A stretch of 64,000 bases of DNA from the NCBI RefSeq assembly GCF_000143415.4, contig NW_003314291.1:341391-405390 (forward strand), in the 5' to 3' direction. The notes under the pieces are model-generated. The model made no database searches, was not told the DNA's origin, and saw nothing but the letters and a program-made list of their open reading frames with translations. Made by a program: the position numbers and the translations under genes. Source of the stretch: Selaginella moellendorffii (taxonomy: Eukaryota > Plantae > Lycopodiophyta). Of this stretch, positions 387 to 52,860 are shown piece by piece. Within the stretch, counting starts at the first letter, position 1. Each line of letters begins with the position of its first letter.

Positions 387-706
387 ATGGTGAGCAAGTC
401 CCAGCTGATGCTTCTGCCCATGTTTGTGACAATCCTCCTGGTTGGAGTGGACGTCAGTGGGATCACCAACGCAGCAGCCCAGCGGCAATGCAAAATCTGG
501 ATGGAACTGGGACGGCCATAAGTGCATCCAGTGTCCCAAAGGCTGGTATTGGTATAGCAGCAATTGCCACCGATGCCTCTCCAGATGGAAGTGGAGTGGA
601 AGCAAATGCGTGAGTTGCCCGAGAAACTGGTACTGGTACAACAACAAGTGCCACCAATGCCAGTTTTGCTGGAAATGGAGCAAAGGACCACTGCATCAAG
701 AACTGA
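387..706 (+). pseudogene. Secreted Cys/Trp-rich repeat peptide, copy 1 (5 repeats; two +1 A frameshifts)
   Basis: ATG at 387 gives signal peptide MVSKSQLMLLPMFVTILLVGVDVSGITNAAA, homologous to 38364. There is an extra A at 492-495 (caaaatct vs caaatct in the paralogue) and another at 682-684. Correcting both yields CKSGWNWDGHKCIQ/CPKGWYWYSSNCHR/CLSRWKWSGSKCVS/CPRNWYWYNNKCHQ/CQFCWKWSKDHCIKN* (TGA 704-706), colinear with the intact gene at 37442. Confidence 0.8.
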
Positions 707-1076
707 CCAAATTGGAGGCACAAAATGAATTGTGATTTTAAATCTGATTTAAATAAAATCGCAAACTTATTGGGAGAAACATGGGCTCGAACTCTCTACC
801 TCAGGTAGAATCAAAGGGCTAATGGAGCATCGGTTAAAAAAAGAGGAAGTTATGGTGTGCAATTTATAAATTGTGTGTGGACGATCATACGCAAAAACTG
901 ACATGTTGTCTTCCAATTCGTCTATAATTTTATGGCCATAATATGCCCTTCAGATGGCCATGGCATGTTTCCATTATCACTCCATACATTCATTGGCATA
1001 ACTTTGACTTGTTAACTTAGGGTTGGTAGCATCCCTGCCCAAGACGGGATTCAACTGGCATGGTAGATGCTAGGAG

Positions 1077-21447: not shown

Positions 21448-22038
21448 ATGAGGAAGCTTCTGGTAGTTGCTTTCTTGGCTATATTCTTTGCAGGAGCTAC
21501 TTCTTCGCGATTGTTAGCGTCTACTCCACCACGATCTCCATCGCCAGGATCTCTAGCAGTGGAGAAATCGATCTCTATAGCTGTTTCCTACACAGGAAAG
21601 GATAACTTCACCGATGGAACCCTTTTGACGTGCCCACAAACCGCGATTCATCCTAACGTTATGGTCCCAGGACATGTTGATCCTGCGCAGCTTTACTCCA
21701 TCGTGATGATAGATAGGCGAGCTTCGCGGTCGATGTTTACATTGGCAGATCAATTCACGTACGTCCACTATTGGATCGCCAACATCCCTGGATCAAAGGT
21801 TGACGCTGGCACAATTTTGGAGGAGTATATGAGGCCTGCACCCCACGATTTCATGCAGCACAAGTACGAGTTTATACTGTATAAGCAGCAAGGGCAGATC
21901 AATACGCCTCTCGCGGATAGATTCGTCAAGGACTGGGAAGCGGTCGCAAGCGCTTACAACCTTGGCAGCCCAGTAGCAACGACTTCCTTTGTTGCGCAGC
22001 TCACCCTAAACTTTAGAACGAGAATGTTCCAATGTTAA
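21448..22038 (+). CDS. Secreted intronless PEBP family protein, copy 3, 196 aa
   Basis: Intact ORF; about 12 nt differences from copy 2 by manual count. Confidence 0.88.
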   Translation: MRKLLVVAFLAIFFAGATSSRLLASTPPRSPSPGSLAVEKSISIAVSYTGKDNFTDGTLLTCPQTAIHPNVMVPGHVDPAQLYSIVMIDRRASRSMFTLADQFTYVHYWIANIPGSKVDAGTILEEYMRPAPHDFMQHKYEFILYKQQGQINTPLADRFVKDWEAVASAYNLGSPVATTSFVAQLTLNFRTRMFQC

Positions 22039-27300: not shown

Positions 27301-28299
27301 AAGCTAAAACTAAAATAGACAAACAACTAAAGAAAAATAGGAAACAAAAGTAATAAGAACTAGTTATCCCATTCTATTCTTAATTACTATTAACCCAGGA
27401 AAATCATACTAACAAACTAGTGAAATTGCTAGAAAGTATATATATTGATATAACTTTGATTTAAATAGGAGATATTGACTAAAATAATGCCACAATGCCC
27501 TACTAAGTATTTTGCCTTAAAATGAAGAATATCTATAAATGTATTTGGAAAATACTTATTGTTCAATTGGTCTTGGCACCAACATTGCCATTGATATTTA
27601 GTCAATTATGTACATCGTGATCTAGAAGCCATAACAGCAAATAATGTTTGAGATCTAAGTGGAGCTAGAGAAGATCATGATAGAGAGCTAGCCACAATAG
27701 CAAATATAGCATTAGATTGTGAAGCAACAATAACCTCACTAAGACTTAAAGGAGCTATGCAAAGAGTTAAATGAAGCCTTAGATTCAGATTATGATCTAG
27801 AGCTTGGGGATGTTATAGTAGCACATTAAGAACCAAACCAACTAGGTAAAGAACTTCAACCTAAGCTAGGTAAAGCCTCAAATTCAGATAATGATCCAAA
27901 GTTTGGGGAAGCCACAATAGCATATTAGGAGCTACAGGAGGAAACATTACATTTAAATTATGATTTGGAGTTTAATAGAGCCACAACAGCACACTAGAAG
28001 CCAAAGGAGCTAAGTAAAGAATTTGAATTTGAGAGGATTTTTATCTAAGTAATGAATAAATAGAATTTCTCCTTAGCTGCACAAAAAGGCATTTTACAAA
28101 ATTCTGAAAGTGTGTCAATGAAGAGACTATTATAAAAATATAAATCATTTGGAGCAAAGTCCCATTGCAGTGAAACTTTATGTTTCACTATTTCCATTAG
28201 CCAAGTAGTTGAAGTTACTAATGTTGAGTGTGTTATTCTGCTATAAATACCTTTGCTTGTGGAGAAAACAACATGAATGGCTTGAAGAAACTCTATCAA

Positions 28300-28967
28300 T
28301 GTGGGGAAAAATACACGACAACAAGAAAGACGGGAAAGACTCCCCTAGGGCTTGTATTCAGCAGTAACTACAAATCACTCATACTGAGTGTGCTGGGCCT
28401 GCAGTAACTCCTCTATGATCACACGTAGGTAACGGTACCACACTTGACCACAGGTTGGACAAGTAGTTGGAATTTGCTGCTCCTCTTGAATTCTCAACTC
28501 CTCGATCGCACGCTTTATCCGCATGTTGTTGGTGACGCGATCGGCAACGGGATCTCGACGGCCTATAGGAGGTCTCACCATCTTCGAGCAAAGAGAACTC
28601 CAGAACCCGAGAGAAAACAAGAACTGTAAAATAACTGAATGGCCGTACTTAAATTCAAACTCCCAAAAACTTAAACACCAACCAATGGCTGAAACTTTCC
28701 CAGCTAATAACTCTTCATCCACAACTCCGATCGACTTGATTTTACCACCAAAGAACTGCCCTTGATCAGATCTTCAACTTTCTAGAAAACAACTTCTTCA
28801 AATTCTCACTTCTGAAATCCATCACTTTTTCTCTCTCTAAACGAAATATTCATAGAAAGCTTCTTCAGCGAGCTTCTTCAATTTTCACCTTTTTCTAGCT
28901 TAGAAATACGTCAGTACTCACAAAAACAACCTCAAGTATGAAAATACGACCGTATATACGGTTGACA
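28300..28967 (-). repeat. 3' LTR of Gypsy element
   Basis: TGTGGGG...GTTGACA; about 8 transition differences from 34307-34974 (manual count). Confidence 0.95.
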
Positions 28968-29469
28968 CCATACCACCCTGATACTCGCGCCGCCCTCGGC
29001 ACGCTGACTACCATTAACCACTGACTTCTTGACTGGTTCAAACCCAACTCTGCTACACTTTCCTCTGACACCGCTCAACTCGGCTCCATTTGACTTCTCA
29101 CACGGCGACACTTCGCCTCTTTCAACTCTCTTCTCCTACACTATTGCTGAGCTCGCCTCCACCGACGTCTACAGCCTCCAAAAATAAATCCTCCTGGCGC
29201 TCCACACCTGAACTCATAAAATCTCCCCCTTCAGCTGCTCCTCTCAAAGATGTGCAGCCAACTCTACCTGCGTCTTCTACGCTTGTTCTTAAATGAAAAC
29301 ACCAACATACCTCCATTCGATTCTGAAACTTCCCATTCAGCTACAACCACAGCTCTCAGCTGGCCTCAGCTCTGGTCATCCTCGACTCTGATTCGGATGG
29401 CTCCGACACATTGGACTCTCGCTCAGCTCCGGCTGTTTCATCATTTGAACGTGTATGGTACTTTTTCAA

Positions 29470-31738
29470 TCAGAAACCATTGATCCGCGTTGGCAGCAGG
29501 TTCCCACTCAAATCTGCCACCTGCACTGAGCCATTGTCGTTGACATTCACCACCACGTAAGGGCCCAGCCACCGTATCTTGAGTTTTCCTGGCCGTTTCC
29601 AAAACTTGCTGTCATACAGCAACACCAAATCCCCTATTGCAAACTTCCGCTCTCGAATATGATCATCATGCCATTTCTTTCTCCGCTTCTGCAATGCCTC
29701 TCTAGCTTGAAATGCCAACAGCCTCGTCTCATCCAATCGTTCTAGCTCGTTCAACCTCTGCTGTATGGCACCGTCCCAGTCCATAGCATGCTCTACAGCC
29801 GTCCTCAAGGCTGGAACTTCAAGCTCCACCGGCAATAGTGCTTCCTGCCCATAAACCAACTGAAAAGGTGAGAACCGAGTGGTCACCTTAAAAGCAACTC
29901 GATATGCCCAGACTGCATCCAAAAGGCGCTTATCCCAATCTGTCCGAGAAGCTGAGCAGGTCTTAGTAACAATCCGGCAAAGAGTTCCATTTGTACGCTC
30001 CACTTGACCATTGCAACGCGGGTAGTAAGGAGTAGACTTCGAGTGATAAACTCCATAAGTTTCTGTCAGTGCTGCCACTGCCTCGTTCAAGAAGTGTGTT
30101 CCCCGATCACTCACCAGTTCGAGGGGAACTCCAAACCGTGTAATTATCTGCTCATAAAGAAACTCCGCAACCTTCTTACCAGTATCCTCCCGTAGAGCCT
30201 TCACCTCAGACCATTTTGTAACGTAATCAATGCAGACCAGTACATACTTATAACCTGTCCGTCGAGCTGGAGGAAACAGTCCGCAAAAATCAATCCCCCA
30301 TTTTTCAAACGGCATCACTGGCAACAGTGGATGAAGAGGCTGGTAGTCACGCTTATCTGGCTTCCCTGCTCGCTGACAAGGGTCACAGGTTTTGACATAG
30401 TACGTAACCTCCTTCCTCAATGTCGGCCACCAATATCCAGCTCTGCAAATAATCTCCACCGTCGCTTCTGTTCCAAAGTGGCCTCCATATGACGAGTCAT
30501 GGCATGCCGCTATCACCTTAGTCGTCTCATGTGGTAGCAAACACCGCCTCAGTACGCTATCTCGTCCAATCCGGTATAATACACCGCCAACCATCGTATA
30601 GAGTCGGCTCTGCAACAAAAGCCGTCGCTTCTGCCGGTTATTCAACCCTGCCGGATACTCGCCATTGCCAAGGAACTTAACCATCTCCACATACCAGTCC
30701 GGCACTGTTTCAAATTGGAAGATAGGTGCATCTGGCAAATCATCCTCTACGCCTACTTCCTCATCACTGTCCTGTGGTGGCAGCCTCGATAAGTGATCTG
30801 GCATCTGATGGCTGCTTCCAGGTTTCAACACAATGCGGAACTGAAATTCCTGGAGCAGCAACAGCCAACGTGTGATTCTTCCTGTCTTGCATGGCTTCCC
30901 TATTAAATACTTCAGTGCCTGATGATCAAGGAAAAACACGAACTCCTTGCCAAGTAGATAATGCCGATATTGCTGGATCGCATAGATCATGCCGAGTCCT
31001 TCCCTCTCAGTTGCTGAATAGCTCTTCTCAGCCGTTGAAAGTTGACGGCTGCTGTAACATATTGGATGATCTGCTCGTCCATCTGAGCATTGACACAGCA
31101 CCACACCAATGGCCACTGCTGATGCATCCACGTGAACGTGAAACTCCAAGTTCCAATCTGGCATCTTCAAAATCGGCGCGTTTACCAGTGCCAGTTTCAA
31201 GCGTTGGAAGGCCGCCTCACATACAGTTGTCCACTCATATTTAGCCCCCTTCTTCAGTAGGCTAGTCAAGGGTAGAGCTTTCTCGGCAAAGTTCCTCACG
31301 AAACGGCGGTGATATCCCACATGCCCAAGAAATGCCTGCAATTGCTTCACAGTCTCTGGTGACACCAGCTGCATGATCACCTGCGTCTTGGCCGGATCGA
31401 CAGCTAAACCTTCTCTTGACACTATCCGACCCAGCAGCACTCCATGCGTTACCCAGAACTGACACTTGAACGGGTTGAGAGAAATCCCATAGTGCCGACA
31501 GCATTCAAAACACTTCTCGAGCAAGCCTTCATGCGCCAACTCGCTCCCATAGACACTGAAGTCGTCAAGGAATACTTCCATAAACTCTCGCATGTACGGC
31601 TGGAAAGCTGCTGTGACGACCCGCTGAAAGGTGGCAGGTGCATTACACAGGCCGAAGGGCATAACTTTGTAGGCATAGCAACCCCACTCAGTCACAAACG
31701 TGGTTTTGAGCTGATCCTCTTCTGCTATCTGCACCAGT
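29470..31738 (-). pseudogene. pol: Pol: C-terminal half of RT, RNase H, integrase
   Basis: Motifs KTTFVTEWG..VMPFGLCNAPATFQR, VFLDD, HVDAS, integrase HHCC zinc finger, WGIDF/SDRGTHF/QVER core and GPY. The RT N-terminal half is missing. The frame ends in NGF*LKKY (probable CGA>TGA). Confidence 0.92.
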
Positions 31739-34117
31739 CGTGGTATCACTGCTGTCATCGATCCCATCCACTATCGGCTCACACGCTACTGGAGTCCAGG
31801 CCGGCCTCTTCCTTGTCCGAACTTGGATAGTGCGCGACTTGTTTCCATCTCCAATCGTAATAGTCCCCTTCGGCCAACTCTGATCTGCCCAGGCCTGTAA
31901 CAGCCACGGTCTTCCCAAAAGAATTGGATAATCCAGCTCGTGTCCAACCATCCTCAGCACCACGTAATCAACATAAAAGATAAAACCGGCAATCTCCGTC
32001 TTCACCCCAGTAAGTACACCAACCGGTCTCGAGCGAGAATGGTTCGCCATGCGGACACGAAAATAAACTGGAGATGGCTGCTCCAACCCAAGTTTTGACA
32101 CCATTTGCTCAGGCATTACGTTGATGGCAGCACCTCCGTCAATCACGCACCCCTTCAAGTGCTGACCTGAAATCTCTGCATCTATAATTGGATTCTCTGC
32201 TTCGATCATTGGCCATGCTGCATTCACTACCACCTCTCGATGGGCCTTGACTGCTGTGGCCACCACTTTCCTCAGACTTGGTGCCAGCTGTAGTAATTGC
32301 GCAAATGTGATACTCGGCTTTTGATTCTCTAAGTCCTTGAGCACGTCGTAGGGCTGAGTTTCTAGATTTAGCACCTGCTTATACCGGCGAGATCTCCGCT
32401 GGCCCATCTTCAACGGCTCACCCCCAAAATGTTCCTTGAATACCTCTGCCAGCCGCTGCGGCGTCGAGATGCCCACCTTCCTCATAACCTCTTGCGGATC
32501 CATTCCACCACTCACTTGGTTCGCGTCCGTTTCCTTGCCGTCATTAGGGCACTGAATAGTCCCCGTGATATTCTTGGCGAGATCTCCGCCATCGGCTATC
32601 GGCGCATCCTGAATGCCGCCTCCTTCCAGACCTAAGTCGATCCCCATTTTTTCCTTGTGGCGCTGCTCCTTCCTGTTTTGGCGAGCTATCATCTCCGGAT
32701 CCTCCTGAGTATGCGTCCGCTCAATTCCCTGTTCAGCCCTTGTTCTCGGCTCATCTCGGATGTACAACCTGCGGTCCCTCCGCTGCAACTGTGCTCGTGT
32801 GTTGACATTCCACACAGGTGTGTCCGCTCGTAACTCTTCAGAATTCACGAAAATGGCTTTAGTATCCACCACCTCTTTTCCCTTGTCCTGATTTTGACGC
32901 TGATTTGGCACTTGCAAGCGGTAGGGGCAATCCTCCTGTCGATGAAGTCCCTGTGTCTGGCATATCCCACAGATTGGCTGATACTCTTCAGACTTCTGTG
33001 CATTCGGACAGTTTGGCGCGATATGTCCAAGTTCCCCACACCGGTAGCACACTATCGGGCCTCGGCCTCGGCCTCCGCCTCTGCCTCCGAACATTCCCAT
33101 CCGGCCGCCACCTCGGCCTCCACCAGCAGTCTGCTGCAGCATTGGCCCCGAGTTCTGCACAGCCCCTGGAGCTCCTACGTTAAAAACCGGGTACGTCTCA
33201 TACTGCTGGTGCTGAACCTGTTGCTGTGGAAATTGTTGTTGATGGTGAAATTGTGGTTGAACGTAATAGCTTGCGACTACAGGTTGCTGCTGGAACTTGG
33301 GTGTCACACGAGCTGGATGAATAAAGCACTTCTCAGGCTTGTGGCCGAACTTCCCACAATACAGACAAGGAGCTTTTGCCGGAACCAGATTCGGACACTC
33401 ACTAGGATAGTGGCCATATCCTTGACACTTAATGCACCAGATCTCAGCTCTCTCATGCACTGGCCGAGTTGGAACTCCCAAACCTTGAACCAGACTCACT
33501 TGGAGTTCTGCCATCTTCTTGGTAAGTGTCTCCACCACATCTTCTTTCACTTTCGTGAGTTGGCTCTCAAATCCGGTCGTGTTTACTGCAGGTAACTGGA
33601 GAACTGACGGCTGGACCGGAATCAAAGGTGGAGCTGCTACGGCTCCAAGCACACCAGTCTGGTACTGTGCAATATTCGGTGAGAACAAGTTACCATATGT
33701 TGCTGGTGGAGCTGCAGCTGCAATATTCCGCGATGACATCCGGGCCTGTTCCCATGTTGCTGCGTGCTCAACTGCTGCGTTCAAATCTGCCGGTCTTTGC
33801 ACCTTCACGTGGAACCCGATTTCAAATGGCAACCCATTCAAGAACCAGCGGACTTGGTCGTCAGCGGCAGGCTGTGGATCTTTCCTCGCGAGCAGCCTCT
33901 TGTAGCGAAGAACATAATTTTGCAATGTCTCTCCAGGTAACAATTGAATTGAATTTAGCTCGTCACTGATACGCTGCTTGAATCCCATAGGACGGAAAGC
34001 ATTGAGAAATGCTGTTTTGAGGTCTGCCCAGGCTGCAAAGGCTGCTGCTGCATTTGCCTGACCATACCATTCTGCTGCTGCTCCCAGCAATGTCGCCGGA
34101 AACAGATGGACTCTCAC
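31688..34117 (-). CDS. gag: Gag-aspartic protease ORF (Gag N-terminus apparently missing)
   Basis: Retrotransposon gag core, three CX2CX4HX4C knuckles plus a CX2CX5HX4C variant, and protease motifs VIDGGA..N and ILLGRPWL. No in-frame ATG upstream. Confidence 0.85.
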   Translation of the reverse strand: MRVHLFPATLLGAAAEWYGQANAAAAFAAWADLKTAFLNAFRPMGFKQRISDELNSIQLLPGETLQNYVLRYKRLLARKDPQPAADDQVRWFLNGLPFEIGFHVKVQRPADLNAAVEHAATWEQARMSSRNIAAAAPPATYGNLFSPNIAQYQTGVLGAVAAPPLIPVQPSVLQLPAVNTTGFESQLTKVKEDVVETLTKKMAELQVSLVQGLGVPTRPVHERAEIWCIKCQGYGHYPSECPNLVPAKAPCLYCGKFGHKPEKCFIHPARVTPKFQQQPVVASYYVQPQFHHQQQFPQQQVQHQQYETYPVFNVGAPGAVQNSGPMLQQTAGGGRGGGRMGMFGGRGGGRGRGPIVCYRCGELGHIAPNCPNAQKSEEYQPICGICQTQGLHRQEDCPYRLQVPNQRQNQDKGKEVVDTKAIFVNSEELRADTPVWNVNTRAQLQRRDRRLYIRDEPRTRAEQGIERTHTQEDPEMIARQNRKEQRHKEKMGIDLGLEGGGIQDAPIADGGDLAKNITGTIQCPNDGKETDANQVSGGMDPQEVMRKVGISTPQRLAEVFKEHFGGEPLKMGQRRSRRYKQVLNLETQPYDVLKDLENQKPSITFAQLLQLAPSLRKVVATAVKAHREVVVNAAWPMIEAENPIIDAEISGQHLKGCVIDGGAAINVMPEQMVSKLGLEQPSPVYFRVRMANHSRSRPVGVLTGVKTEIAGFIFYVDYVVLRMVGHELDYPILLGRPWLLQAWADQSWPKGTITIGDGNKSRTIQVRTRKRPAWTPVACEPIVDGIDDSSDTTTGADSRRGSAQNHVCD

Positions 34118-34284
34118 AGCATCTGCCTGCTCCTGATAGAAAAATCTAGAAAATTATCCCAGTCCGGGGATCTACCCGCCAGACCGAGAACCAACTGCGG
34201 CAAAGGGTGCTTACTGCAGATGCCCACAGATGACCGGCCTTTTCCTCAGGCCCGGTTTACTGCGCAGTTACTGCGACTAAGCCC

Positions 34285-34301
34285 TCCCGGCTAACGCACC
34301 A
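34285..34301 (-). other. Primer-binding site, tRNA-Gly-like
   Basis: Minus strand TGGTGCGTTAGCCGGGA, 5 nt from the LTR; complementary to a tRNA-Gly-type 3' end (...TCCCGGCYAACGCACCA). Confidence 0.7.
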
Positions 34302-34306
34302 AAAAA

Positions 34307-34974
34307 TGTGGGGAAAAATACACGACAACAAGAAAGACGGGAAAGACTCCTCTAGGGCTTGTATTCAGCAGTAACTACAAATCACTCATACTGAGTGCGC
34401 TGGGCCTGCAGTAACTCCTCTATGATCACATGTAGGTAACGGTACCACACTTGACCACAGGTTGGACAAGTAGTTGGAATTTGCTGCTCCTCTTGAATTC
34501 TCAACTCCTCGATCGCACGCCTTATCCGCATGTTGTTGGTGACGCGATCGGCGACGGGATCTCGACGGCCTATAGGAGGTCTCACCATCTTCGAGCAAAG
34601 AGAACTCCAGAACCCGAGAGAAAACAAGAACTGTAAAATAACTGAATGGCCGTACCTAAATTCAAACTCCCAAAAGCTTAAACACCAACCAATGGCTGAA
34701 ACTTTCCCAGCTAATAACTCTTCATCCACAACTCCGATCAACTTGATTTTACCACCAAAGAACTGCCCTTGATCAGATCTTCAACTTTCTAGAAAACAAC
34801 TTCTTCAAATTCTCACTTCTGAAATCCATCACTTTTTCTCTCTCTAAACGAAATATTCATAGAAAGCTTCTTCAGCGAGCTTCTTCAATTTTCACCTTTT
34901 TCTAGCTTAGAAATACGTCAGTACTCACAAAAACAACCTCAAGTATGAAAATACGACCGTATATACGGTTGACA
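34307..34974 (-). repeat. 5' LTR of Gypsy element
   Basis: 668 bp, TG..CA, followed by TSD ATCAA. Confidence 0.95.
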
Positions 34975-37013: not shown

Positions 37014-37311
37014 GGTCACTAAAAGCGGAAGAAATTCATTCAATAACATTCCTCATTAGACATGAATCTAAATGATTCTCAAGCATAGCATTTGCAAGAA
37101 TTATGTTTTGGCAAACCCATTTTACTCCAGACGTTGTAAAACATTAATGTTTTTTACTACAATGAAACCACAAATACCCAAAACGTCTGACTTCCCGCTT
37201 GACATGGTCGAAGATCTACATCCGTATCCGCATGGCTTCACATTTTACTTTTCAATGTCGAAAAAGTCAGCCGAGTTATCCGGAACTGAACTATAACACG
37301 CTCTCCTGCAC

Positions 37312-37318
37312 TATAAAT
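37312..37318 (+). promoter_or_regulatory. TATA box of Cys/Trp-rich peptide gene 2
   Basis: TATAAAT ~125 bp upstream of ATG 37442; AATAAA at 37799-37804 downstream of the stop. Confidence 0.55.
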
Positions 37319-37441
37319 CCTCCCACTCCATACTCAAGCACATCAAAGCTCATACTCAAGCTTCTCCAAGTTTCTCTAGCTTTCTCCGATCTCGTTCACA
37401 GGTCTGGGATCACATCAAAGCAAGAGGCGTTCTTAAAAAAG

Positions 37442-37711
37442 ATGGCGAGCAACAAGATGCTGCTGGCGATGCTTGTGGTGGTGCTCCTGGTGGGAGTTGA
37501 CATTGGAGGAATTGCAAGTGCGAGCGCCCAGGGGCAATGCAAGCCGGGGTGGCACTGGGATGGAAATTACTGTGTCCGTTGCCAGCCAAGCTGGTACTGG
37601 TACAACAATTCTTGCCAACGCTGCCCGATCAACTGGTACTGGTATGACAACTCTTGCCACCGCTGCCAGATGGGCTGGCGCTGGACTGGAAGTTTCTGCA
37701 ACGAGAACTGA
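37442..37711 (+). CDS. Secreted Cys/Trp-rich repeat peptide, copy 2 (intact, 89 aa, 4 repeats)
   Basis: Signal MASNKMLLAMLVVVLLVGVDIGGIASASA, then CKPGWHWDGNYCVR/CQPSWYWYNNSCQR/CPINWYWYDNSCHR/CQMGWRWTGSFCNEN*. Start chosen by homology to paralogues. Confidence 0.88.
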   Translation: MASNKMLLAMLVVVLLVGVDIGGIASASAQGQCKPGWHWDGNYCVRCQPSWYWYNNSCQRCPINWYWYDNSCHRCQMGWRWTGSFCNEN

Positions 37712-38363
37712 AGTTGCCCATCAAGATCCAAGCTCATGTACCATGTCAATGACAATAATCATTGTAGTTGTGCTGTTTCTTGTGATAACCTTTTGGTGAA
37801 TAAAATGTGTGTGCTTTTCTTTCCATGACATCCCATTCTAAGGCTCGGTTTCCTCACCCAGAATCCGCTTGACGAGAGACTTGCTGCCAGTTTCACTTTT
37901 AGTTTCTAGCAACTCGAGCAGCAAGATTATCGAAATACCGAAGTCTTGCGCTGCTGAGTTTCATACTCAAGACAAGAGATGAGAGAGAAATGTGAATCAT
38001 GCTTCTTAGTTTGGCCACAAGTATGAGTGGACTTTAAGAAATTACGGTTAGTAAATTTCTTGCAGTTTCTAGCTATTTACTTTTAAAAATATTATCATAC
38101 TTTTTAATGCATTGTCTTCTGATGATTTCACGGGACTTAAATAGAGACTTTTTCATCTGGATTGACCCCGTCAATCAAGCACAAACACGACATGTCATGC
38201 AGGAGACTCAGTAAAAACCGTGTGCATAGCTGTCTTATTCATCCTCAAATCCTCCATATAAATTGGTCCCACATTGGCAACACCATAACCCAGCAAAGCA
38301 TTTAATCAAGAGAAAGAAGAGATACAAGAAAAGCAATCAGTTTGCATTTCTATTGACGATACA

Positions 38364-38546
38364 ATGGCGAGCGAGTCCCAGCTGATGCTTCTGGCCATGT
38401 TTGTGACAATCCTCCTGGTTGGAGTGGACGTTGGTGGAATCGAAAGTGCAGCAGCCCAGCAGAAATGCAAATCTGGCTGGAACTGGGACGGCCACAAGTG
38501 CATCCAGTGCCCCAAAGGCTGGTACTGGTATAGCAACGATTGCACC
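38364..38546 (+). pseudogene. Secreted Cys/Trp-rich repeat peptide, copy 3, truncated by Copia insertion
   Basis: MASESQLMLLAMFVTILLVGVDVGGIESAAAQQKCKSGWNWDGHKCIQCPKGWYWYSNDC, followed by LTR TG at 38547. Promoter 38075-38363 is homologous to ~25-386. Confidence 0.85.
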
Positions 38547-38697
38547 TGAAAGAAAAGCGGAGCAAGAACAACAGATTTCTCTTCAACACATACATTGATT
38601 CATGTATGGCTGTATATATATACAACTTCAATCAAATCGGAAATCACTAGAGATTTGATTGCGATTCGGACTGTTTCTGTTCATCATTATTCCTACA
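38547..38697 (-). repeat. Copia 3' LTR (151 bp)
   Basis: Minus strand TGTAGG...CTTTCA directly after the polypurine tract AGGGGGAG. Confidence 0.8.
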
Positions 38698-39296
38698 CTC
38701 CCCCTTCAAGCTGAGGGCACTTGACACTCCAAGTTGATTCCTCAGCTTGATGAATGTGAGCTCCGAAAGTGGCTTGGTTAGAAGGTCTACCAACTGATAC
38801 TGTGAAGGAACGTATTCCAGGTGAAGATCTCTGGCTGCTACATGTTCACGAATGAAGTGATGCTGCACATCTATATGTTTCGTACGAGCATGAAACACAG
38901 GATTCTTTGACATGGTGATTGCACTTCTGCTGTCACAATGCAGAATGGTCGCATCTGATTGCTGTTGATTGAGTTCTCCAAGTAATCGACAAAGCCAGAT
39001 GATCTCCCTTGCTGCTGTACTGACAGCTATGTATTCTTCTTTTGCACTAGAAAGAGCAATTGTCATTTGTTTCTTGCTTCCCCATGAAACCAGAGCATCA
39101 TCAATTATGCAGCAAATTCCGGAGGTTGAATGTCGTGTATCCAAGTTGCCAGCCCAATCTACATTGCAGTAAGCTTGAAGAACAAGTTTGGACTGACCTG
39201 AGCATTTGTAAAGCAATCCATGAGCAACTATTCCTTTCAAATACCTCAAAGCTCTCTTTGCCATTTACCAATGATAACAACTTGAAGACTGCATGT
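38698..39296 (-). pseudogene. pol: Copia RT C-terminus / RNase H
   Basis: AKRALRYLKG...DWAG...CDSRSAI...NPVFHARTKHIDVQHHFIRE...DLLTKPL. Confidence 0.92.
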
Positions 39297-39301
39297 ATCG
39301 G

Positions 39302-40449
39302 TGTAATTTGCAAGTTTACTTTTCCTTTCCAATTTGCAAGCTTACTTTATTTATCTATCCAACACTGCCTTGGCTTTTGTTAAGTTCCCTCGCCAAGGTT
39401 CCCGCTTATGGTATTAGCTCCTACTTGGTCCTACTTGGTTTCAGCTACTCATTGCACGAGCAATGGAGTGTTAGCTATCCATCCACGGATTCCCAAATCC
39501 CTCCCAATCCCCCTCCCCGGGTTAGACTAGACTTAAGGTTCGGCTACACTCCCTGCAGGCACAAGCAGCCAAGCACACCAAGCCATCAAGTTCTTAACAT
39601 CCCTTAGTACCACAAGACTTGATCATGGGACCTTTAAATCCCAAATCTTGGGTGCAACACTTGCTTCAGGACGCTGGGGCGAAACACCGTGGCCTAACGG
39701 CCTGGTATGGGTACCTCTACCCCCCCACTTCCATCCCGAAGGGAAGGCCTAAGCCCCTTGGAAAGGCGAGGACCAATGAGCCACAAGGTACTCAAGTGGG
39801 GCACCACTCCACATGAGCCGGAAGCACTGCAATCGGTTTCCCTTTCGAGAGTGGGAGCTACTCTTGAGCATTTCCTGGGGTGGCCCCTCCGACACCACCC
39901 AAGTCCATGCTCACTCCCACCCAATCTCAACCTTAAGTCAGTTTGGAAGCACCATTGGAGAGTTCCTTCAAGATTGGTTTCTAAACCTCACTATCCCTAC
40001 TATACTTTTGGAACCCCTTGCAGCCCCCCCCCCCTCTGGGAGGCTCACACTTTGGGCTTTCACCCCTTGACCTGTATTAGTACTTGGACTCGGTCTCGAA
40101 CTTGATCTTGGATTTGATCTCGGACCCAACTTCGGATTCGGTCTCGGACTCGATCTCGGACTCGATCTCGGACCCGATCTCGGACTTGACTTCGGACTCG
40201 ACTTCGGACTCGATCTTGGACCCGATCTTGGATCTCGGACTCCGTCTCGAACTCGGCATCAAACTCAGTCTCGAACTCGGTCTTTGAGTCGGCCTCGGAC
40301 TCGATTCCGGACTCTATCTCGAACTCAGTATCAGATTCGGTATTGGACTCGATCTCAGACTCGGTCCCATCCGATGAACTCTTTGTCATTTCGGTCATGC
40401 TTTTGGGGATCCTTTAGCCTACGACACCTCAAGGAATTGGTTCCTTACA
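39302..40449 (-). repeat. 3' LTR of chromovirus
   Basis: 1148 bp; clearly diverged from the 5' LTR (many substitutions and indels). Confidence 0.92.
40084..40365. repeat. 12-bp tandem array (CTCGGACTCGAT-like) inside LTR; second copy 46447-46740
   Basis: More than 20 degenerate 12-mers in each LTR; the source of the low-complexity ESE/DSIS ORFs. Confidence 0.9.
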
Positions 40450-40914
40450 ACTCTACCACCCATAGAAGAAGTTCAATGCCCATATCGAACGTCTCTTTTT
40501 ATTCTACGACTTGTTGACCATGTCTCCGAGGGCATCCCCCCATATAGCGGTGTGCCTAAGTTAGCCTCCCTGGCCAAGAGCTCATAATAACGGGATATAG
40601 GTATCCCTATACCCCTCACCTCACCACACCCTAGTATGGGGTCGGGACTTGAACCCAGCCTTGCTTTACTAGGGGGTTGGGACTCGAACCCAACCTCCGT
40701 AGAATACGTCTACGGATTCGACATCCCCATAGAGAGTTGGGCGTAGTTCCCTACGCCTGGTCGACCTAGCTAACCCATGCTAATTAGCTTACCTTTAGCG
40801 CGCCTTCAGGTCCCAATATATACCATTGCTCAACTTCACAAATTGATACCTTTTAATTGAACTTTGCATAAGTATATAGAGTAATTTCTGCTAGAGAATT
40901 TCTGCTATGCAAAA

Positions 40915-43900
40915 ATTCCTCCACTAAATCTCGCGCGTTCGCTAGGTTCTCCTTTGGTTCCCATGTTGCTTCGCAGTGTGGAAATCCTTTCCACTTCACA
41001 TGGAACTCTCTCACCTCGCGTCCTTATCGTTTGCTCTTGCGCGCATTGAGGATGGCCTCGACTTCGTATTCCTCTTCCCCTTGGATAACCTTAAGTAAGG
41101 GTCTTACTTGGTCCTTGCGAAGCGGATCCTCAAAGTACGGCTTGAGTAAGTTCACGTGGAACACTGGGTGCATCTTCCCCATCTCTCGAGGAAGTTGGAG
41201 ACGGTAAGCCACTTTACCGATTCGTGCCTCAATCTTGTAAGGCCCCGCGAACCTGCTTAAGGAACTCAAGATCAATTCATTTATAGGAATACATGCATTT
41301 TACCTTTAGGTCAACTTCCGACTGATCCCACTTGGTAGCCTGAGGTTCTTGGTGTTCAGCCACACCTTCTCCCCAGCTTGGAACTTCATATCCCGGCGCT
41401 TTTGGTTTGCGTACTTGGTTTGCCTTTGTTGAGCTCGTTCTAAGGAATCCCTCACTAGATTCCAAATGTTGAGTCTTTCCGCTGTGAATGCCTCCACTAC
41501 GGGTAACTCTCCATGATACTCGGCCACGCCGAGTTCCATAGGACTTTCGATAGCTTGCCCACTGATGACTTCCCATGGACTCACCTCAATACTTGAGTGT
41601 GGTGAGTTGTTATAGCACATTTCTGCAAGCCCCAAATGACTTACCCAATCGGTCTGGTTTTCCGAGACATAGCATCGCAAATAATCCTCCAGCTGCCTAT
41701 TCACCTTTTCCGTTTGTCCATTTGTTTGTGGGTGATAGGCTGTGCTGAATTTTAACTTGGTGCAATACTGTTCTAGGAGAGTTCTCTAGAACCTACTGGT
41801 GAAGATTTTATCTCGATATGAGATAATCTCTTTTGGCTTTCCCCACACTCGAACCACTTGTTCAAAGAACAACTTCGCCACACCTTCCATATCCACTTTC
41901 GTTGTGGTGGGTATGAAATGTGCTATCTTCAAAAATCGGTCCACCACCACGAATATCGCATTGAACCCCTTGCTTGGGGGAGTCCTGTGATGAAGTCCAT
42001 CGTAAGACATTTCCACAGACAATCTGGAATTGGGATGTTTTGCAACAAGCCCCCACTAGCCTTAGTCACGGCTTTGACCTACTAACATGTTGGACATATC
42101 TTTACATAGTCTTGGATGTCCTTAGCCATATCTGGCTAATGATACTTCCTCTTGAGTAAGCCCATCGTTTTGGGCATTCCGCCGTGTCTTGCAAGAGGTC
42201 CGTCATGACACTCTTCTAAGGCTACCTTCCTTAGTTCCCCTTTTGGGACATACACCCTTGTTTGCTTGTAATAGATGAGTCCATTGCATTCTACATAGCC
42301 CATTTTCTCTTCCGTTGGCAACTCACCTCTTTAGTGAGCTTCCTGTGCCTCCAGATTCCATAGCAACACTTCTTGTGCTAGACCATCGTTCTCATATACT
42401 GTCCGCACATCATCCCAAAAGGTTGCTGTTGCACTAGATATCGCCAACTTCAAGCTCGCTTTTCAACTTAGCGCATCTGCCACGATGTTGCTCTTCCCAG
42501 ACTTGTACAGAATCTCACAATCAAACTTGGCCAAAGCATTAGCCCACCGACCTTGTTTCCCCCTTAGGTCGGGCTGTGACAAGAAGTGTTTCATTGCCAC
42601 ATTGTCCGTGTAAACCTTGAAGTGTCTCTCAAGGTAGTGTTGCCACTCTTTGAGCGCCTTGACCACCGCAAACAATTCCTTCTCGTGGGCAGGCCACTTT
42701 CGTTGAGCCTTATCCAACTTCTTCAAGAAGAACGCTACTAGATGGTTATCTTGCTTCAAAATTGTGCCCAACACAAAGTCTGAAGCATCTGTTTCTACCT
42801 CAAAGTCCTTACCAAAATCCGGTAACACCAATACGGGAGCCTTACTCAACTTCCCTTTGAGGTGGACAAATGCCGCTTTGCATTCCACTGTCCATACCAT
42901 CTTCCCTTTTCCCGTTTGGTCCGTTAAGGGCAGGGCTACTCTCGAATAGTGTCTAATAAACTTTTGGTAATAGTTGCATAGCCCCAAGAATGCCCTTAAC
43001 TCATGTACATTCGATGGTCGCTCCCAATTTTGGATCGTTTGGACCTTCTTAGGGTCCATTTTGAGCCCATCCTTGCCCACCACATGCCTGAGAAACTTTA
43101 CCTCTTGCTGAGCAAAGTCACATTTGCTCTCTTTAGCATACAGTTGGTGTTCCCTTAGTTTCTCAAACACCTTTGTCAAGTGTTCGGCATGATCCTCTAG
43201 CGTTTCGCTATAGATCAAGATGTTGTCAATATAGACGACCACAAAGTGATCTAGATAGGGTACAAAGACGTGGTTCATCAATGCTGAAAACGTTGCCGGC
43301 GCATTGCATAGCCCAAAGGGCATCACCAAAAACTCAAAGCTCCCATACCTTGTTCGACAAGTTGTCTTCTCGACATCTTCCTCTGCTACCCTGATTTGGT
43401 AGTATCCTAACCTTAGATCAATCCTCGAGAAGTATTTTTCCTTTCCCAACCTATCGAACAGGTCCTCAATCCTTAGCAAAAGGTACTTGTTCTTCTTTGT
43501 ATACTTGTTGAGCAATCAATAGTCTATACACATGCACATAGATCCATCTTTCTTTTTCACAAATAACACTGGCGCCCCATATGGCGACTTGCTCAACCTA
43601 ACATACCCTTTGTCCACCAACTCCTCTAGTTGGCACTTGAGCTCTTCGAGTTTTTTTTCGTTCAAACGATAGGGGGGACGAACCACCGTCTCAGCACCCT
43701 CAACCAGCTCAATCTTATGTTCTATCGGTCGTGCGGGGGGCAACCCTACCGGGAGCTCCTCCGGCATGGTATCCTGGAATTAGTCCAACACCCGCTAGAT
43801 CACTAAAGGTACTTCTTCCATTCCCATCTTTTTGTCACTCTTCACCGAGAGTAAGCACAAAAATGCTACCTTGGTTCCTTTAGTGAGTTGTCCTCTCGTG

Positions 43901-44330
43901 GACACCAGGTTTAGGCAGGAATCTTTGGCCTTGTATTGCCCTACCTTTAGATCCTAGGCCTCCACCTTAGATCTTCTTCCTTGGGCATTCATTAGCACCA
44001 CAAGGTTCCTACCTTGTCCATGTAGGGCTACCATGAACCGATTGAACCAATCCATCCCAAAGATTATGTCAAATCCCACTATGTCCAACACGTGAAATCC
44101 ATATCTACTTTCCATGTCCCTACTTCGACCTTCACTTGTCGAAGTACCTCATCGGTGCTTTGGCTGCCTTAAACAAATTCTATAGTCCTTGGTTCACCCA
44201 GCCGCTGCACCGTTAGTCTGGCTTGGTGGACTATGTCTGCAGCCACAAAATTATCCGAAGCACCCGTGTCAATAGAGATCTTAACAAAGCTCTTGGAGGG
44301 CTAGTAGATGTCGCGAACGACTCTCTACCA
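40915..44330 (-). pseudogene. pol: Chromovirus pol (protease, RT, RNase H, integrase, chromodomain) with stops/frameshifts
   Basis: Motifs IDTGASDNF, SKSPYGAPVLFVKKKDGS, VMPFGLCNAPATF, YIDN (catalytic DD damaged), ETDAS, MHPVFHVNLLKPY and chromodomain EEYEVEAIL...VKWKGF...TWEP. Confidence 0.93.
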
Positions 44331-44337
44331 AAGTTGC

Positions 44338-45579
44338 TCATGTAATGAGTAATTTTGAGTTAGGGACTAAATCATGTACCTCAGTTTGGATTTCACCTGA
44401 CTTAATGGCTATATTGGCTCTGGCCTTTTTCGGGTAGGGACATTCCCTTGAGAAGTGTTCCGCTTCACTACAGTTGTAGCATACGTTGTTTCCCACGTTG
44501 CTAACCGACTTACCCTTCTTATCCATGGGTTTGTCTCTTTTTACTTGATTCCCCCACGTATTCGCTCGCTGGCCACCGGATCTGCCTTTCCAGAACCCCA
44601 AGGACTCATTCTTAGAGAAACTCTTCTTGAATTTCCCTATGTTATATGTTCCCCTTGGTTTGGCCCCTTTGCTAAACGTGGACCTCGACCCTGTCATGTT
44701 CCCCTTTCGCAGGTTATCATTGAAATGCACTTTGATAGCCGCATCCAACGCTTCTTTGTAATTGGTCGGGTTCCAACGCATCACCTCGCTGTGAGCCCAG
44801 GTTTGCAAGCCTGATATGAAGGCATGGAATGCAACCATATCACCCATATCTGTGACCAGTATCCTCTTTGCCATAAATCCATTCACATACTCTTGAATGG
44901 TTCCGGTTTGTTTCAGCCTACTCAGCTTATCCCTTAGGTGCAAAGTAACATTCGGAGGAATGTATGTCGTGCGGATCCTCGCCTTCATCATTTCCCAAGT
45001 GGCCACTGGTCCTTCGTTGACCTCCGTCGTTCTCCACCAAGACTTGGCATTATCTGCCAAGTATGGTTTTGCACATGGGACCTTCTCTGAGCTTGGTAAC
45101 CGCAACGCTCGGAAGTAGTCCTTCATATCGTAAAACCAATCCTCCACCACCTTATAGTCGTTCACTCCCTTGAAGACTGGTGGGGGCTTTGGTTTGTACT
45201 TGGGAACTGCTTGAGGGACTGATTCCACTTCGGTTTGTTCAACCTTGTTTGGTTCTGCCTCAGTCCCTACCGAAGGGTCCATACCTTCTGTGCTGCCAGC
45301 ATCCGTGGTCTTTTGCTTTTTCTTTTGCTTCTCGTCACGCTTTAGCTTGCGTACGAGAGTCTCCAGCAGGGCATTGGTTTGTGCCAATTGTCCTTCTAAA
45401 ACGTCCAATTGAGCCTTGGACGACCGAACCTCACCACAGGACTCCTGTTTGGAAGTTTCTTCACTAGAGTCCTCCTCATGCAAAGATTCCTCATCCATAG
45501 CCTCTTGTTCAATCGGAGGCTCCAGCTCTGGTGGAGGTTCTATCTCCGCCTTGGTTCGTTTACACTCTGCCTTTGCCAT
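44338..45579 (-). CDS. gag: Chromovirus Gag
   Basis: PPVFKG..D...VEDW, AKSWW, LKQTGTIQEY and CYNCSEAEHFSREC knuckle. First ATG after the PBS chosen, because the ORF-track start lies in the LTR. Confidence 0.85.
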   Translation of the reverse strand: MAKAECKRTKAEIEPPPELEPPIEQEAMDEESLHEEDSSEETSKQESCGEVRSSKAQLDVLEGQLAQTNALLETLVRKLKRDEKQKKKQKTTDAGSTEGMDPSVGTEAEPNKVEQTEVESVPQAVPKYKPKPPPVFKGVNDYKVVEDWFYDMKDYFRALRLPSSEKVPCAKPYLADNAKSWWRTTEVNEGPVATWEMMKARIRTTYIPPNVTLHLRDKLSRLKQTGTIQEYVNGFMAKRILVTDMGDMVAFHAFISGLQTWAHSEVMRWNPTNYKEALDAAIKVHFNDNLRKGNMTGSRSTFSKGAKPRGTYNIGKFKKSFSKNESLGFWKGRSGGQRANTWGNQVKRDKPMDKKGKSVSNVGNNVCYNCSEAEHFSRECPYPKKARANIAIKSGEIQTEVHDLVPNSKLLIT

Positions 45580-45638
45580 CTCCCAGCAATCTGCCTCTAT
45601 CCTTCGGTAGAACTGAGGAAAAAGCTCCAATACCAAAT

Positions 45639-46824
45639 TGTAAGCTACAAATTTTTCCTTTCCAATTTGCCAGCTTACCTCATCTATCCGTCCAACACTG
45701 CCTTGGCTTTTACTAAGTTCCCTCGCCAAGGTTCCCGTCTATGGTACTAGCTCCTACTTGGTTCTACTTGGTTTCAACTACTCACTACATGAGCAACAGA
45801 GTGTTAGCTAGCCATCCATGGATTCCCAAATCCCTCCCAATCCCCCTTCCCGGGTTAGACTAGACTTAAGGTTCGGCTACACTCCCCACAAGCACAAGCA
45901 GCCAAGCACACCAAACCACCAGATTCCTAACATCCCTTGGTATCACAAGACTTTATCATGGGACCTTCTAAATCCCAAGTCTTGGGTGCAACACTTACTT
46001 CGGGATGCCAGGGCGAAACACCATGGCCTAACGGCCCGGTATGGGTACCTCTACCCCCCCACTTCCATCCCGAAGGGAAGGCCCAAGCCCTTGGAAGGGC
46101 AAGGACCAATGAGCCACAAGGTACTCAAGTGGGGCACCACTCCACATGAGCCGGGAGCACCGCAATCAGTTTCCCTTTCAGGAGTGGGAGCTGCTCTTGA
46201 GCACTTTCTGGGGTGGCCCCTCCGACACCACCCAAGTCCATGCTCACTCCCACCCAAGGCCCCTCGGCCCTCGTCTCAACCTCAAGTCAGTTGGGAACCC
46301 CCTTGGGAAAGTTTTTTAAAGGGGGGTTCGGGGCCCCCCCAATCCCTATAATATTTTTGGAACCCAAAAAACCCCCCCCCCCCCCCCCCCCCCCGGCCCT
46401 AGGAGACGCACGCTTTGGGCTTTCACCCCTTGACCTATATTAGTATTTGGACTCGGTCTCGGACTTGATTTTGGACCCGACTTGGGAGTCGGTCTCGGAC
46501 TCGATCTCGAACTCGATCTCAGACCCGATCTCAGACCCGATCTCATACTCGACTTTGGACTCGACCTCGGACTCGATCTCGGATCTCGGACTCTATCTCA
46601 AACTCTGTCTCGAACTTGGTCTCGAACTCAGTCTCGAACTTAGTCTCGAACTCAGTCTCCGAGTCGGCCTCGGACTCGATTCCGGACTCTATCTCGAACT
46701 CGGTCTTAGAGTCGGTCTTGGACTTGATCTCAGACTCGGTCCCATCCGATGAACTCTTTGTCATTTCAGTCATGCTTTCGGGGATCCTTTAGCCTACGAC
46801 ATCTTGGGGAGTTGGTTCCTTACA
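45639..46824 (-). repeat. 5' LTR of chromovirus
   Basis: 1186 bp, adjacent to the PBS, followed by the TSD. Confidence 0.92.
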
Positions 46825-50300: not shown

Positions 50301-52860
50301 TCTGTTTCAATACATGCAATGTATGATAAATAATATGATGCTGCTGCATATGGATCAAGAATAATTTTTATATCTACATTTGATTGCCAAAAATTTGATA
50401 ATTTGTTATTAAAAGTATTTGTGTTTATGTCTTTTGGTTTTTTGTTTATAAATTTTTTTTGTATTTGTTATTTTAGATCTTATTGTAGCTTTATATTGCT
50501 CATATGTTATTTTTATTATTTTTAAATATTCATCAAACTCTAAATTTTTTAGATCTATAGTTTTATCTTCTAGTATTGTTTTTAATTTTTTTGTAATTAT
50601 TGTATATGAATCCTTTTCATGTTTTGTAATGTCTTTTATAGGCTCTAAGATTTCTGTTTATGGCATTGGAGTAATTGGGTAATTAAATCTACAATTTATA
50701 TTTTATATTTCTTACATGTTTTTCTCTATTTATGAGTTTGAACATCTTTTATATTCTATAGTACTTTCTCTGAATCAGTACATATATTTTCATTAGCATA
50801 TTCTTATTTGTTCTAATATTTGTGGTGGATTTTCTAACCATATTCGTGCATGTTCATGTGGTGTACCACATTGTTGACATTGTGTTACAAATACATAGTC
50901 TTTTACTTTCCTTCCAAATATGTGATAATTGGACATTAATAATTTTCTAAATACTGATGTTTTATGTGCATAATATCGTATTGTGGTGATTGGATCAGCT
51001 CTTAGTATTTTATATATTTTCTCTTTTTCATTTAAATTTTTTATCTCTTCTTTTTGTAATATATCTGTATTTAAATGTTTTAAAGCATTTATTAATGGTT
51101 CCCAATGTCTTTCTAAACAACAAAGAGTTAAGAATAGTGTTGGTGGTCCTAATTGTCTTATCATGGCAAATGCATCTTTTTTTAGTGCTTCTAAATTATC
51201 TGGTGATGTTCTTAGACTTTTAAAATATCTAAAACCTATGTTTGACTTTAATATTTTATCCATATTTTCATTTACAAATACATCTTTTGATGTGATTTTT
51301 CTTCCTTCATAAGTAACTTTTCTTAATCTAAAACCTGCATTTTGATTGAAAAATTTGATTTTAGATGTTACTGCTGTTGTAAATATATGTTCAATATGTC
51401 ATGCAAATTTTCTATCCTCATTCATTAATTCCCATTGGATTATTTCTTGATATGTAAATTTAATTTTTATGTCTAATGGTCTTGGTTTTTCACCAAATAG
51501 TTTTGGATATGCCATTTCTTTAGCATTTTCATCTACAAATAATCCTAATGTGTTGTCCTTGACTAGGTGCTATAACTAAAACTTTATTTGTAAAATTATC
51601 TATTTGATTTGCATCTAAGAAGCTAATTACCATAGTATTTATTGGTAATATCTTATTATCAGGGTTGTCTATAAGATTTACACTTTCATCATCTTCATTT
51701 AATTCTTGTTGTAATTGGTTTTCTAATATTATTTGTGTGTTATTATCTATATTGTCTAAATTTTGTGCTTGTTGAAACCAGTTTTCATCTATATTAATTT
51801 TATTTTTCTTATATAGTTCTGTTTCTTGTAATTGTTTTATACTATTATAAATATAATGTGGTCTGGTTATTCCATATTTATAATAATATTTATCAGTTAA
51901 TCTTCGTTTCAGCTGAATTGTTATTGTTTATGTTTCTTCAAATGTTCTTGGTAGTTTATTAATTATTGGTTTAATATTAGTTGGGACATTTATTATTCCT
52001 CCTTTTATGCACTGCTGATATTGAGGTTGATTTGGTATTGTTATATNNNNNNNNNNNNNNNNNNNNNNNNNNNNNNNNNNNNNNNNNNNNNNNNNNNNNN
52101 NNNNNNNNNNNNNNNNNNNNNNNNNNNNNNNNNNNNNNNNNNNNNNTATCGATCAATTAGATTCATTCTAATTTTTTCTGGACTTTTATATTTTTCTTTA
52201 TTTGTCATGCATTGATTGCATGTATATTCTTGTTTTTTTATTATATTTAAACCAAATTCTTTTACATATTTTACATGGATGTATTGGTATATCCTGTATA
52301 GCTTCATTATACATTTGTAGTGCTTTCATACTTTTTAGATTGTTCATGTCATATTCATTTTCTTGTTGTTCTTTCTCTTTTATTGTTTTTTTTTCTTTGC
52401 TTCTAATATAATATACTCTTCTTTTAAGTTTTTCATTTGATATAATACTCCTTGTTCTTTGTCGAAAAATATTTATTTTTTCATTTGTTTGTTTTTGTGA
52501 GTTCCAAGTTTCCATAAGTATTTTGTCTTCTTCTGTTGTATATATATTTTTTTGATTTTGTAGAGTATGTTCTTCATGTTTTTCTTTGGATATATTAATA
52601 GTTTTTATTTGCTCATTTTTATTATTTCTTGATAAATAATAGTATCTAGAAACAATTTGTTGCTCAGTTAAATCAATATTATGGCTGAATTTTAGTTTTT
52701 TTGCTTTTTATTTGTAGATCCTTAAATTGATAACAATTTTGCATCTAGAAGTTCTGTCTATTTAAATTTTCTTTTTGTTATAATTTTTCCCTTTATACTT
52801 AAATGTCCTTATTGCCCTTGATGTCCTTACACCCACCGGATAGGTGGGTGCATCCAGATT
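47381..52860 (-). mobile_element. Decayed Helitron-superfamily element: Rep (HUH) - Pif1 helicase - AP endonuclease (Helentron-like)
   Basis: Rep: AMIRQLGPPTLFLTL, DPIT..RYY and Q.GTPHEH. Helicase: FLTGGTGTGKS (~49378-49410), IDEISMVS, FGG....TGDFYQL.P, ELTEIMRQKDD, DGLVNGADG and YTALSR. Endonuclease: ICMQE, IIIGD, IDHIW and YWTDH. GC hairpin at 47396-47415. Boundaries approximate. Confidence 0.88.
52047..52146. other. Assembly gap (N run); others at 53086-53387 and 58404-58503
   Basis: N characters. Confidence 1.

Follow-up and report, generated by a model that had tools for sequence, protein, structure and literature searches.

The open reading frame at 37442-37711 of the stretch of Selaginella moellendorffii DNA analysed here (64,000 nucleotides in its full length, hereafter the window) is a real single-exon gene that is missing from the annotation. 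With a probability of about 0.5, this gene encodes a secreted array of four hairpins that serves as a multivalent binder of a microbial or wall surface, in defence or in association with the wall. According to this proposal, the gene would belong to a large, lineage-restricted family shaped by birth and death, and its 89-aa precursor would lose the signal peptide and reach the apoplast as a protein of about 60 aa. The mature protein would consist of four consecutive beta-hairpins, each with its own C1-C12 disulfide and with W-x-W on its first strand, the module being perhaps a reduced version of a single-disulfide hairpin known from TNFR (A1) and from ephrin-receptor-like/ELAPOR1 and furin-like cysteine-rich domains. 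Each hairpin would turn its aromatic side chains towards a surface of repetitive structure, for instance a wall polysaccharide of microbes or plants or the envelope of a microbe, and the whole array would act outside the cell as a multivalent binder, that is, as a defence or wall-associated protein.

The coordinates given for the gene in the earlier note proved exact. Judged from the sequence, the start context at 37442 is good and the surrounding signals fit a small single-exon gene (Table 1). A sequence scan of 37337-37441 revealed no upstream ATG, and the stranded RNA reads contained no splice joints at the locus. The leader runs from a basic n-region through a hydrophobic core of 14 residues to an A-x-A before Q, which places small residues at -3 and -1, features that recur in all three copies of the gene in the window, and with this candidate signal peptide the product is probably secreted. 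After removal of the signal peptide the precursor amounts to about 60 aa and about 7.5 kDa; the mass calculated for the mature form is about 7,491 Da, from which four disulfides would subtract 8 Da and cyclisation of Q30 another 17 Da. The Trp content is 13%; the intact copy has eight Cys and eight Trp, and its mature protein has a net charge of about +2 and a pI of 8.2.

Table 1. Features of the intact gene, its two broken paralogues and the neighbouring mobile elements, in positions of the window.
Feature	Position	Strand	Basis or remark
Intact CDS, single exon, 89 aa including the signal peptide	37442..37711	+	ORF and translation; stop 37709-37711
TATA box (TATAAAT) of the intact gene	37312..37318	+	From the sequence; 25 nt upstream of paralogue RNA molecule ends at 37337/37338
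Putative 5' UTR, about 105 nt, A-rich start context aaaaaagATGGCG	37337..37441	+	Paralogue molecule ends in run X23, homologous position
Candidate signal peptide, residues 1-29 (MASNK, hydrophobic core, ASA), likely cleavage before Q30	37442..37528	+	Sequence pattern, kept in three copies
Four 14-residue units of 42 nt each, starting at 37538, 37580, 37622 and 37664: CKPGWHWDGNYCVR, CQPSWYWYNNSCQR, CPINWYWYDNSCHR, CQMGWRWTGSFCNE	37538..37705	+	
AATAAA polyadenylation signal	37799..37804	+	Sequence; 88 nt past the stop
Broken paralogue: signal peptide, +1 A frameshift at about 492-495, four units and a degenerate fifth	387..735	+	Sequence comparison
Truncated paralogue: signal peptide and two units, stop 38547-38549	38364..38549	+	Homology to copy 387 ends at 38543
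205-aa ORF, about 100 nt beyond the break of copy 38364	38647..39264	-	Looks like the tail of a Copia-type polyprotein
Ty3/Gypsy element	39320-46753		LTRs at about 39320 and 45653, pieces 90-94% identical, 6333 bp apart
Ty3/Gypsy LTR retrotransposon	28298-34604	-	LTRs at 28298 and 34305

The array is built from a strictly spaced unit. In a six-frame translation of the 64-kb window, the pattern C-x3-W-x-[WYF]-x4-C occurred nine times, and all nine occurrences lay in the three loci at 387, 37442 and 38364; the first unit of copy 387, which is broken by a frameshift, was left out of this count. Among the 11 units compared, positions 1 (C), 5 (W) and 7 (W) were invariant, and position 12 (C) was absent from one unit, the last of copy 387, where Leu replaces the closing Cys. 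The remaining non-Cys positions vary, which bears out the description of freely diverging residues outside the Cys and Trp skeleton, and the linkers between units consist of two variable residues. Two unit types, W-[HNRK]-W-[DTS]-G and W-Y-W-Y-[NDS]-[NS], recur between the genes. Units of the same type from different genes share 74-79% of their DNA sequence, compared with 45-64% for neighbours of different type within one gene, and the unit types are therefore older than the gene duplications; the same-type neighbouring units A2 and A3 are 79% alike. Between copies 387 and 38364, the mature part carries two nonsynonymous and four synonymous changes in 24 codons (omega about 0.06) and the leader gives an omega of about 0.86, both values resting on small numbers. 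Comparison of the intact copy with the other two yielded a saturated pS of 0.75-0.86 and a pN of 0.23-0.25, indicating that the skeleton has been kept through a long divergence.

The three paralogues with a signal peptide and 14-residue units that the earlier note had listed all exist, although only the one at 37442-37711 is intact. Copies 387 and 38364, with about 81% identity across promoter, UTR and CDS, are pseudogenes. An extra A within unit 1 of copy 387 (gcaaaatctgg, versus gcaaatctgg in copy 38364) shifts its frame, and we treated this copy as two unjoined pieces, 387-491 and 496-699. Its TATA box is mutated at about 304 (CATCTAAAT, versus CATATAAAT in copy 38364), and its leader bears deletions. 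The reported variation between four and five repeats holds for the four of the intact copy, while the "five" turned out to be four complete units plus a degenerate one, obtained only by reading across the frameshift of copy 387. In copy 38364, the homology to copy 387 stops exactly after GATTGC at 38543, and a search for the missing remainder beyond the transposons recovered nothing within the 64-kb window. The copies thus comprise intact, frameshifted and truncated forms, lie amid transposons and differ in unit number.

The surroundings are rich in mobile elements. The intact gene is flanked by the Ty3/Gypsy element with LTRs at 28298 and 34305 and, on the 39320 side, by nested transposon remains. 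In the former element, the starts of the LTRs, separated by 6007 bp, share 98% identity and the gag/pol ORFs are long (809 and 765 aa), and for these reasons its insertion is probably young. The 205-aa ORF beyond copy 38364 matched no Pfam family at E 0.001, and its likeness to a Copia-type polyprotein tail comes from reading its translation. In the element at 39320-46753, both LTRs contain an array of tandemly repeated 12-nt units (40076-40378 and 46427-46753). Elsewhere in the window, a 156-aa ORF on the minus strand (50793-51263) contains a Helitron_like_N domain (E 9e-18), near which lie assembly gaps seen as runs of N (52047-52146, 53086-53387 and 58404-58503). Three plus-strand ORFs of 196 aa (6000-6590, 11178-11768 and 21448-22038) show a weak match to PEBP (PF01161) and are 96-100% identical to SELMODRAFT_416299 and SELMODRAFT_416302; the identity of the first of them to SELMODRAFT proteins confirms the window as S. 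moellendorffii DNA.

Transcription was followed in two stranded S. moellendorffii RNA runs, X22 and X23, with about 12% of each placed at a likeness of at least 95%. Many reads of both runs fell on 37337-37563; their first mates map to the minus strand, which corresponds to RNA of the plus strand. In run X23, the depth rose to about 330 in the 12% sample, and molecule ends clustered at 37337/8, 25 nt downstream of the TATA box. These reads differed from the window at fixed positions (238 of 239 reads at 37401 and 147 of 147 at 37536), and all of them departed from the window sequence at 37563, beyond which they encode W-D-G-K-K-C-V-Y-C-P. The reads on 37337-37563 therefore belong to paralogues, and since the read bases were mixed at 37526 and 37550, two or more of these are expressed. 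As 8 of the 21 bases beyond 37563 differ, the reads are less likely to stem from an allele of another accession. Copy 38364 attracted a few reads, which carried fixed differences and continued beyond 38543 into sequence encoding HRCLSGWKWS; their source is therefore an intact relative of this copy. Transcription of close paralogues is strong and begins at the homologous site. In the X22 and X23 samples the depth over 37610-37810 was near zero, at most about 1, and no read in these two samples was attributable to the intact copy, so the RNA-seq check proposed in the earlier note has a positive outcome for the close paralogues and a negative one for 37442-37711 itself, a minor and possibly silent member of the family.

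The expressed paralogues are 95-99% like this gene over the 5' UTR, the signal peptide and the first half of unit 1, and then diverge abruptly (8 of 21 bases). Such a mosaic of leader and units points to exchange among family members by gene conversion or recombination, or else to a fast-evolving mature part behind a conserved leader. In run X18, which is labelled as a second organism, 16% of the words sampled from 37300-37850 were found, and these may come from a relative in another species or reflect a labelling issue.

AlphaFold2, supplied with an alignment of 26 rows, predicted eight strands forming four hairpins (mean pLDDT 82.5), with W-x-W-x on the first strand of each, a two-residue G/N turn and x-C-x-x on the second strand. 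The rows were taken from the three copies of the window and from slices, cut in period, of P0001, P0016 and P0005, proteins retrieved in our searches; MAFFT set the overlapping slices of P0001 and P0005 by mutual identity, and not all of them stand in the register of the query. Because the borrowed rows could bias the fold, the 89-aa precursor was folded alone as a control, and the single-sequence prediction gave the same four hairpins (mature pLDDT 75-88) together with a helix over residues 5-30, in the region of the candidate signal peptide. The idea that each unit is a beta-hairpin thus agrees with the predictions made with and without an alignment, which place one hairpin in every unit.

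Within each unit, the Cys residues at positions 1 and 12 are probably joined by a disulfide. An arrangement with a single disulfide per unit is the most economical, and we infer the C-x10-C pairing within units because the first and the last Cys of the array have no CxxC neighbour and would otherwise be left as odd Cys in an extended array. Both this end-of-array argument and the hairpin register of the model favour C1-C12. Instead of facing a ligand, the side chains of the Trp residues may form a mini-core by packing against the disulfides.

Pfam returned only sub-threshold matches for the intact copy, with none to Ephrin_rec_like (PF07699) at E up to 10. TNFR_ELAPOR1_6th (PF23091, cut-off 33.2 bits) scored 16.2 bits (E 0.01) with the intact copy and 14.6 bits with copy 387, whose post-frameshift piece reached 21.9 bits (E 1.5e-4) with Ephrin_rec_like, where the gathering cut-off is 23.1. 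The defensin, thionin, LTP, snakin/GASA, hevein and RALF families gave no Pfam match at E up to 10, consistent with the mismatch to plant cysteine-rich classes perceived at the outset. The proposed echo of chitin-binding CBM14 modules found no such backing: PF01607 was not matched, the Atlas feature score of 0.76 is at chance level, and one CBM14-type NMR structure appeared at Z 2.1.

A word-index protein search with the 89-aa protein yielded no candidate. Using phmmer against 1.84 billion representatives of about 15 billion predicted proteins, we found no close relative; 26 matches reached E 0.001 or better, all of them much longer multi-repeat proteins. Several share the 14-residue CxxC-x10 period, and two with this period, P0005 and P0006, pass the Pfam threshold for TNFR_ELAPOR1_6th at 49.2 and 52.2 bits; another match, P0002, is VSP-like. 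A sequence search of the PDB with the protein by itself placed the furin-like repeats of R-spondin-2 first, at E 0.033, which is not significant. A search of the PDB with our profile A1 returned ELAPOR1 at E 1e-5, which we discarded as not independent, the profile being dominated by rows of P0005, itself a TNFR_ELAPOR1_6th protein.

Fold comparison gave weak matches of a consistent kind. Foldseek found nothing in the PDB at E 0.001 or better (best E 0.28), the best VIA-align wide match had a weak Z of 4.0, and TM values were likewise weak, at 0.45-0.61 on 60 residues (0.49-0.61 for the Atlas shape rows). Nearly all top rows from the PDB and the Atlas shape search are nevertheless Eph cysteine-rich domains, ELAPOR1, TNFR, cysteine-rich domains of class C GPCRs, and Ephrin_rec_like/TNFR_ELAPOR1 clusters. 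The ESM Atlas feature search peaked at a score of 0.78, with recognition below threshold, and provided no usable lead. As the sub-threshold Pfam matches, HMMER, the PDB fold rows and the Atlas shape rows agree, the building block is of a known kind, an ephrin-receptor-like, ELAPOR1/TNFR-like or furin-like cysteine-rich repeat. The notion of an unprecedented scaffold has accordingly to be given up: the weak matches point to ephrin-receptor-like, ELAPOR1/TNFR-like and furin-like repeats, several of them with the same 14-residue CxxC-x10 period. Full-text literature searches retrieved no paper on the W-x-W hairpin motif or the family, and a secreted plant mini-protein made solely of W-x-W hairpins is not described in the papers searched.

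Among the functions that such a protein might have, we favour binding to glycans or surfaces because the product is small, probably secreted and composed of repeated rigid aromatic hairpins, and because it comes from an expanded, lineage-restricted family with variable unit number and with pseudogenes among transposons. Traits of this sort are typical of defence-type or surface-binding proteins and less so of conserved hormones. A directly membrane-active antimicrobial peptide, in which Trp and Arg/Lys on disulfide-stapled hairpins disrupt microbial membranes, would draw on the 13% Trp, the secretory leader and the fast family turnover; tachyplesin-like hairpins and the Trp-rich plant puroindolines offer the comparison for such disruption. 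Past its break, copy 387 encodes a piece of pI 9.3 and charge about +8.7, but the charge of the intact copy is only about +2 at pI 8.2 and the four-hairpin rod is not clearly amphipathic, and we consider membrane attack unlikely. Small secreted cysteine-rich proteins are often ligands in plants, and the array might serve signalling or recognition outside the cell (in reproduction or cell-cell recognition) by binding a receptor ectodomain as R-spondin does. The furin-like repeats of R-spondin-2 were indeed the best PDB sequence row, though at E 0.033; signalling peptides, however, are as a rule shared between species and encoded by few gene copies, whereas this family lacks any relative among about 15 billion proteins and shows pseudogenes and variable unit number, which makes a ligand quite improbable. 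We attach very little weight to a precursor of Trp-containing cross-linked or excised peptides (RiPP) with the 14-residue unit as the core peptide. Repeated units resemble a multi-core precursor, and Selaginella produces BURP-derived cyclopeptides (PMC11253845), but known burpitide cores are not framed by Cys (PMC11253845), and the protein contains neither a BURP domain (PF03181) nor any other Pfam domain. Its two-residue variable linkers lack conserved dibasic, recognition or cleavage sites, and the predicted structure of the entire array is a single chain of hairpins, so that the RiPP precursor suggested in the earlier note finds no support here.

Two further readings concern the status of the locus. 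That the ORF arose by chance in repetitive DNA and is no gene would accord with its lack of annotation and its absence from protein databases, yet it is hardly credible in view of the signal peptide, the phased Cys/Trp skeleton kept across saturated synonymous divergence, the promoter and polyA signals, and the strong strand-specific transcription of near-identical paralogues. Alternatively, the family may be real and this particular copy silent and heading for decay, contributing nothing at present. Its lack of assignable reads in two RNA runs, against a paralogue depth of about 330, speaks for this possibility, as do the breakage of both neighbouring copies and a site between a Ty3/Gypsy element and nested transposon remains. 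On the other hand, the ORF, the signal peptide, all eight Cys, all eight Trp, the TATA box and the polyA signal are intact, and the reads come from two samples only, about 12% of each at a likeness of at least 95%, so that expression may be tissue- or stress-specific; we regard a silent, decaying copy as somewhat doubtful.

If the secreted multivalent binder is the correct reading, the plant cysteine-rich peptide classes would gain a scaffold for defence or wall binding that comes from an early vascular plant. We put forward more tentatively that these proteins would form a new class of that kind, restricted to spikemosses as far as searched, in which free-standing single-disulfide "tryptophan hairpin" arrays bind microbial or wall glycans multivalently, on a scaffold either independent of receptor-type repeats or reduced from them. 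The scaffold is very small, modular and easily synthesised, and its unit number varies naturally. The annotation of the model lycophyte would then miss a whole expanded and strongly transcribed family, to which the present locus contributes one intact, apparently silent member and two routes of decay, frameshift with promoter loss and truncation.

Several known systems resemble the array in part. The N-terminal hairpin of long-form C-type lectin-like domains (Dectin-1, NKG2D) has the pattern C-P-x-x-W-x-x-Y/F-x-x-x-C and is a one-disulfide hairpin, but it occurs once within a larger fold, and its PDB sequence rows are weak (E 0.1-6, not significant). In the hevein-type domain (CBM18), the W-x-W strand forms the sugar-binding face. 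This domain is, like the Selaginella protein, a small disulfide-rich secreted plant module with a W-x-W strand, and we use it as a mechanistic analogy only, since it has another Cys framework, knotted and with eight Cys in about 43 aa, and the Selaginella protein gave no Pfam match to it.

The best sequence matches are the metagenomic proteins P0001 (728 aa; E 1.9e-14, 41% identity) and P0016 (E 1.8e-4), which contain arrays of C-x-R-C-P-x-G-Q-H-Y-Y-N-x-R with the same 14-residue period as the Selaginella units and share with them P2, G4, aromatics at positions 7-8, the Asn turn and Arg14. In contrast to the Trp-rich Selaginella units, these are Tyr-rich, and the arrays are parts of long proteins. 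About 17 such units make up the C-terminal part of P0001, which matched no Pfam family at E up to 0.01 and has a faint precomputed 6BHPP match on record. P0001 lies at L001:1001-3187 of a 1.83-Mb metagenome contig, beside genes resembling those for thymidylate kinase and DNA polymerase III delta', and because of this setting it is probably bacterial. Shared descent is therefore doubtful, and the likeness may be the convergence of a simple module.

Close structural counterparts are the single-disulfide modules reportedly named A1 in TNFR and C1 in the EGFR and insulin receptor in the module scheme of Naismith and Sprang, and we take the 14-residue unit to fit either type (C-x2-G-x-aromatic ... 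C). These modules are hairpins of 12-17 residues that have the C-x2-G-x-aromatic pattern and a disulfide from the first to the last Cys, the pairing we presume here. In the receptors they alternate with two-disulfide modules, whereas the Selaginella array, if its pairing is as presumed, uses the one-disulfide type only, joined by two-residue linkers. A similar picture emerges for the repeats of Ephrin_rec_like (formerly GCC2_GCC3) and TNFR_ELAPOR1_6th, which resemble our units in the CxxC-x10 spacing, in the small residue or Gly that occupies position 4, in the aromatics of the first strand and in the Asn/Gly turn. Like the predicted Selaginella protein they form a chain of disulfide-bonded hairpins, and they supply the nearest PDB and Atlas shape rows. 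Their hits contain 0-4% Trp, whereas the W-x-W pair is invariant in the Selaginella units; and while those repeats are one domain of a large receptor, the Selaginella array constitutes the whole 60-aa mature protein.
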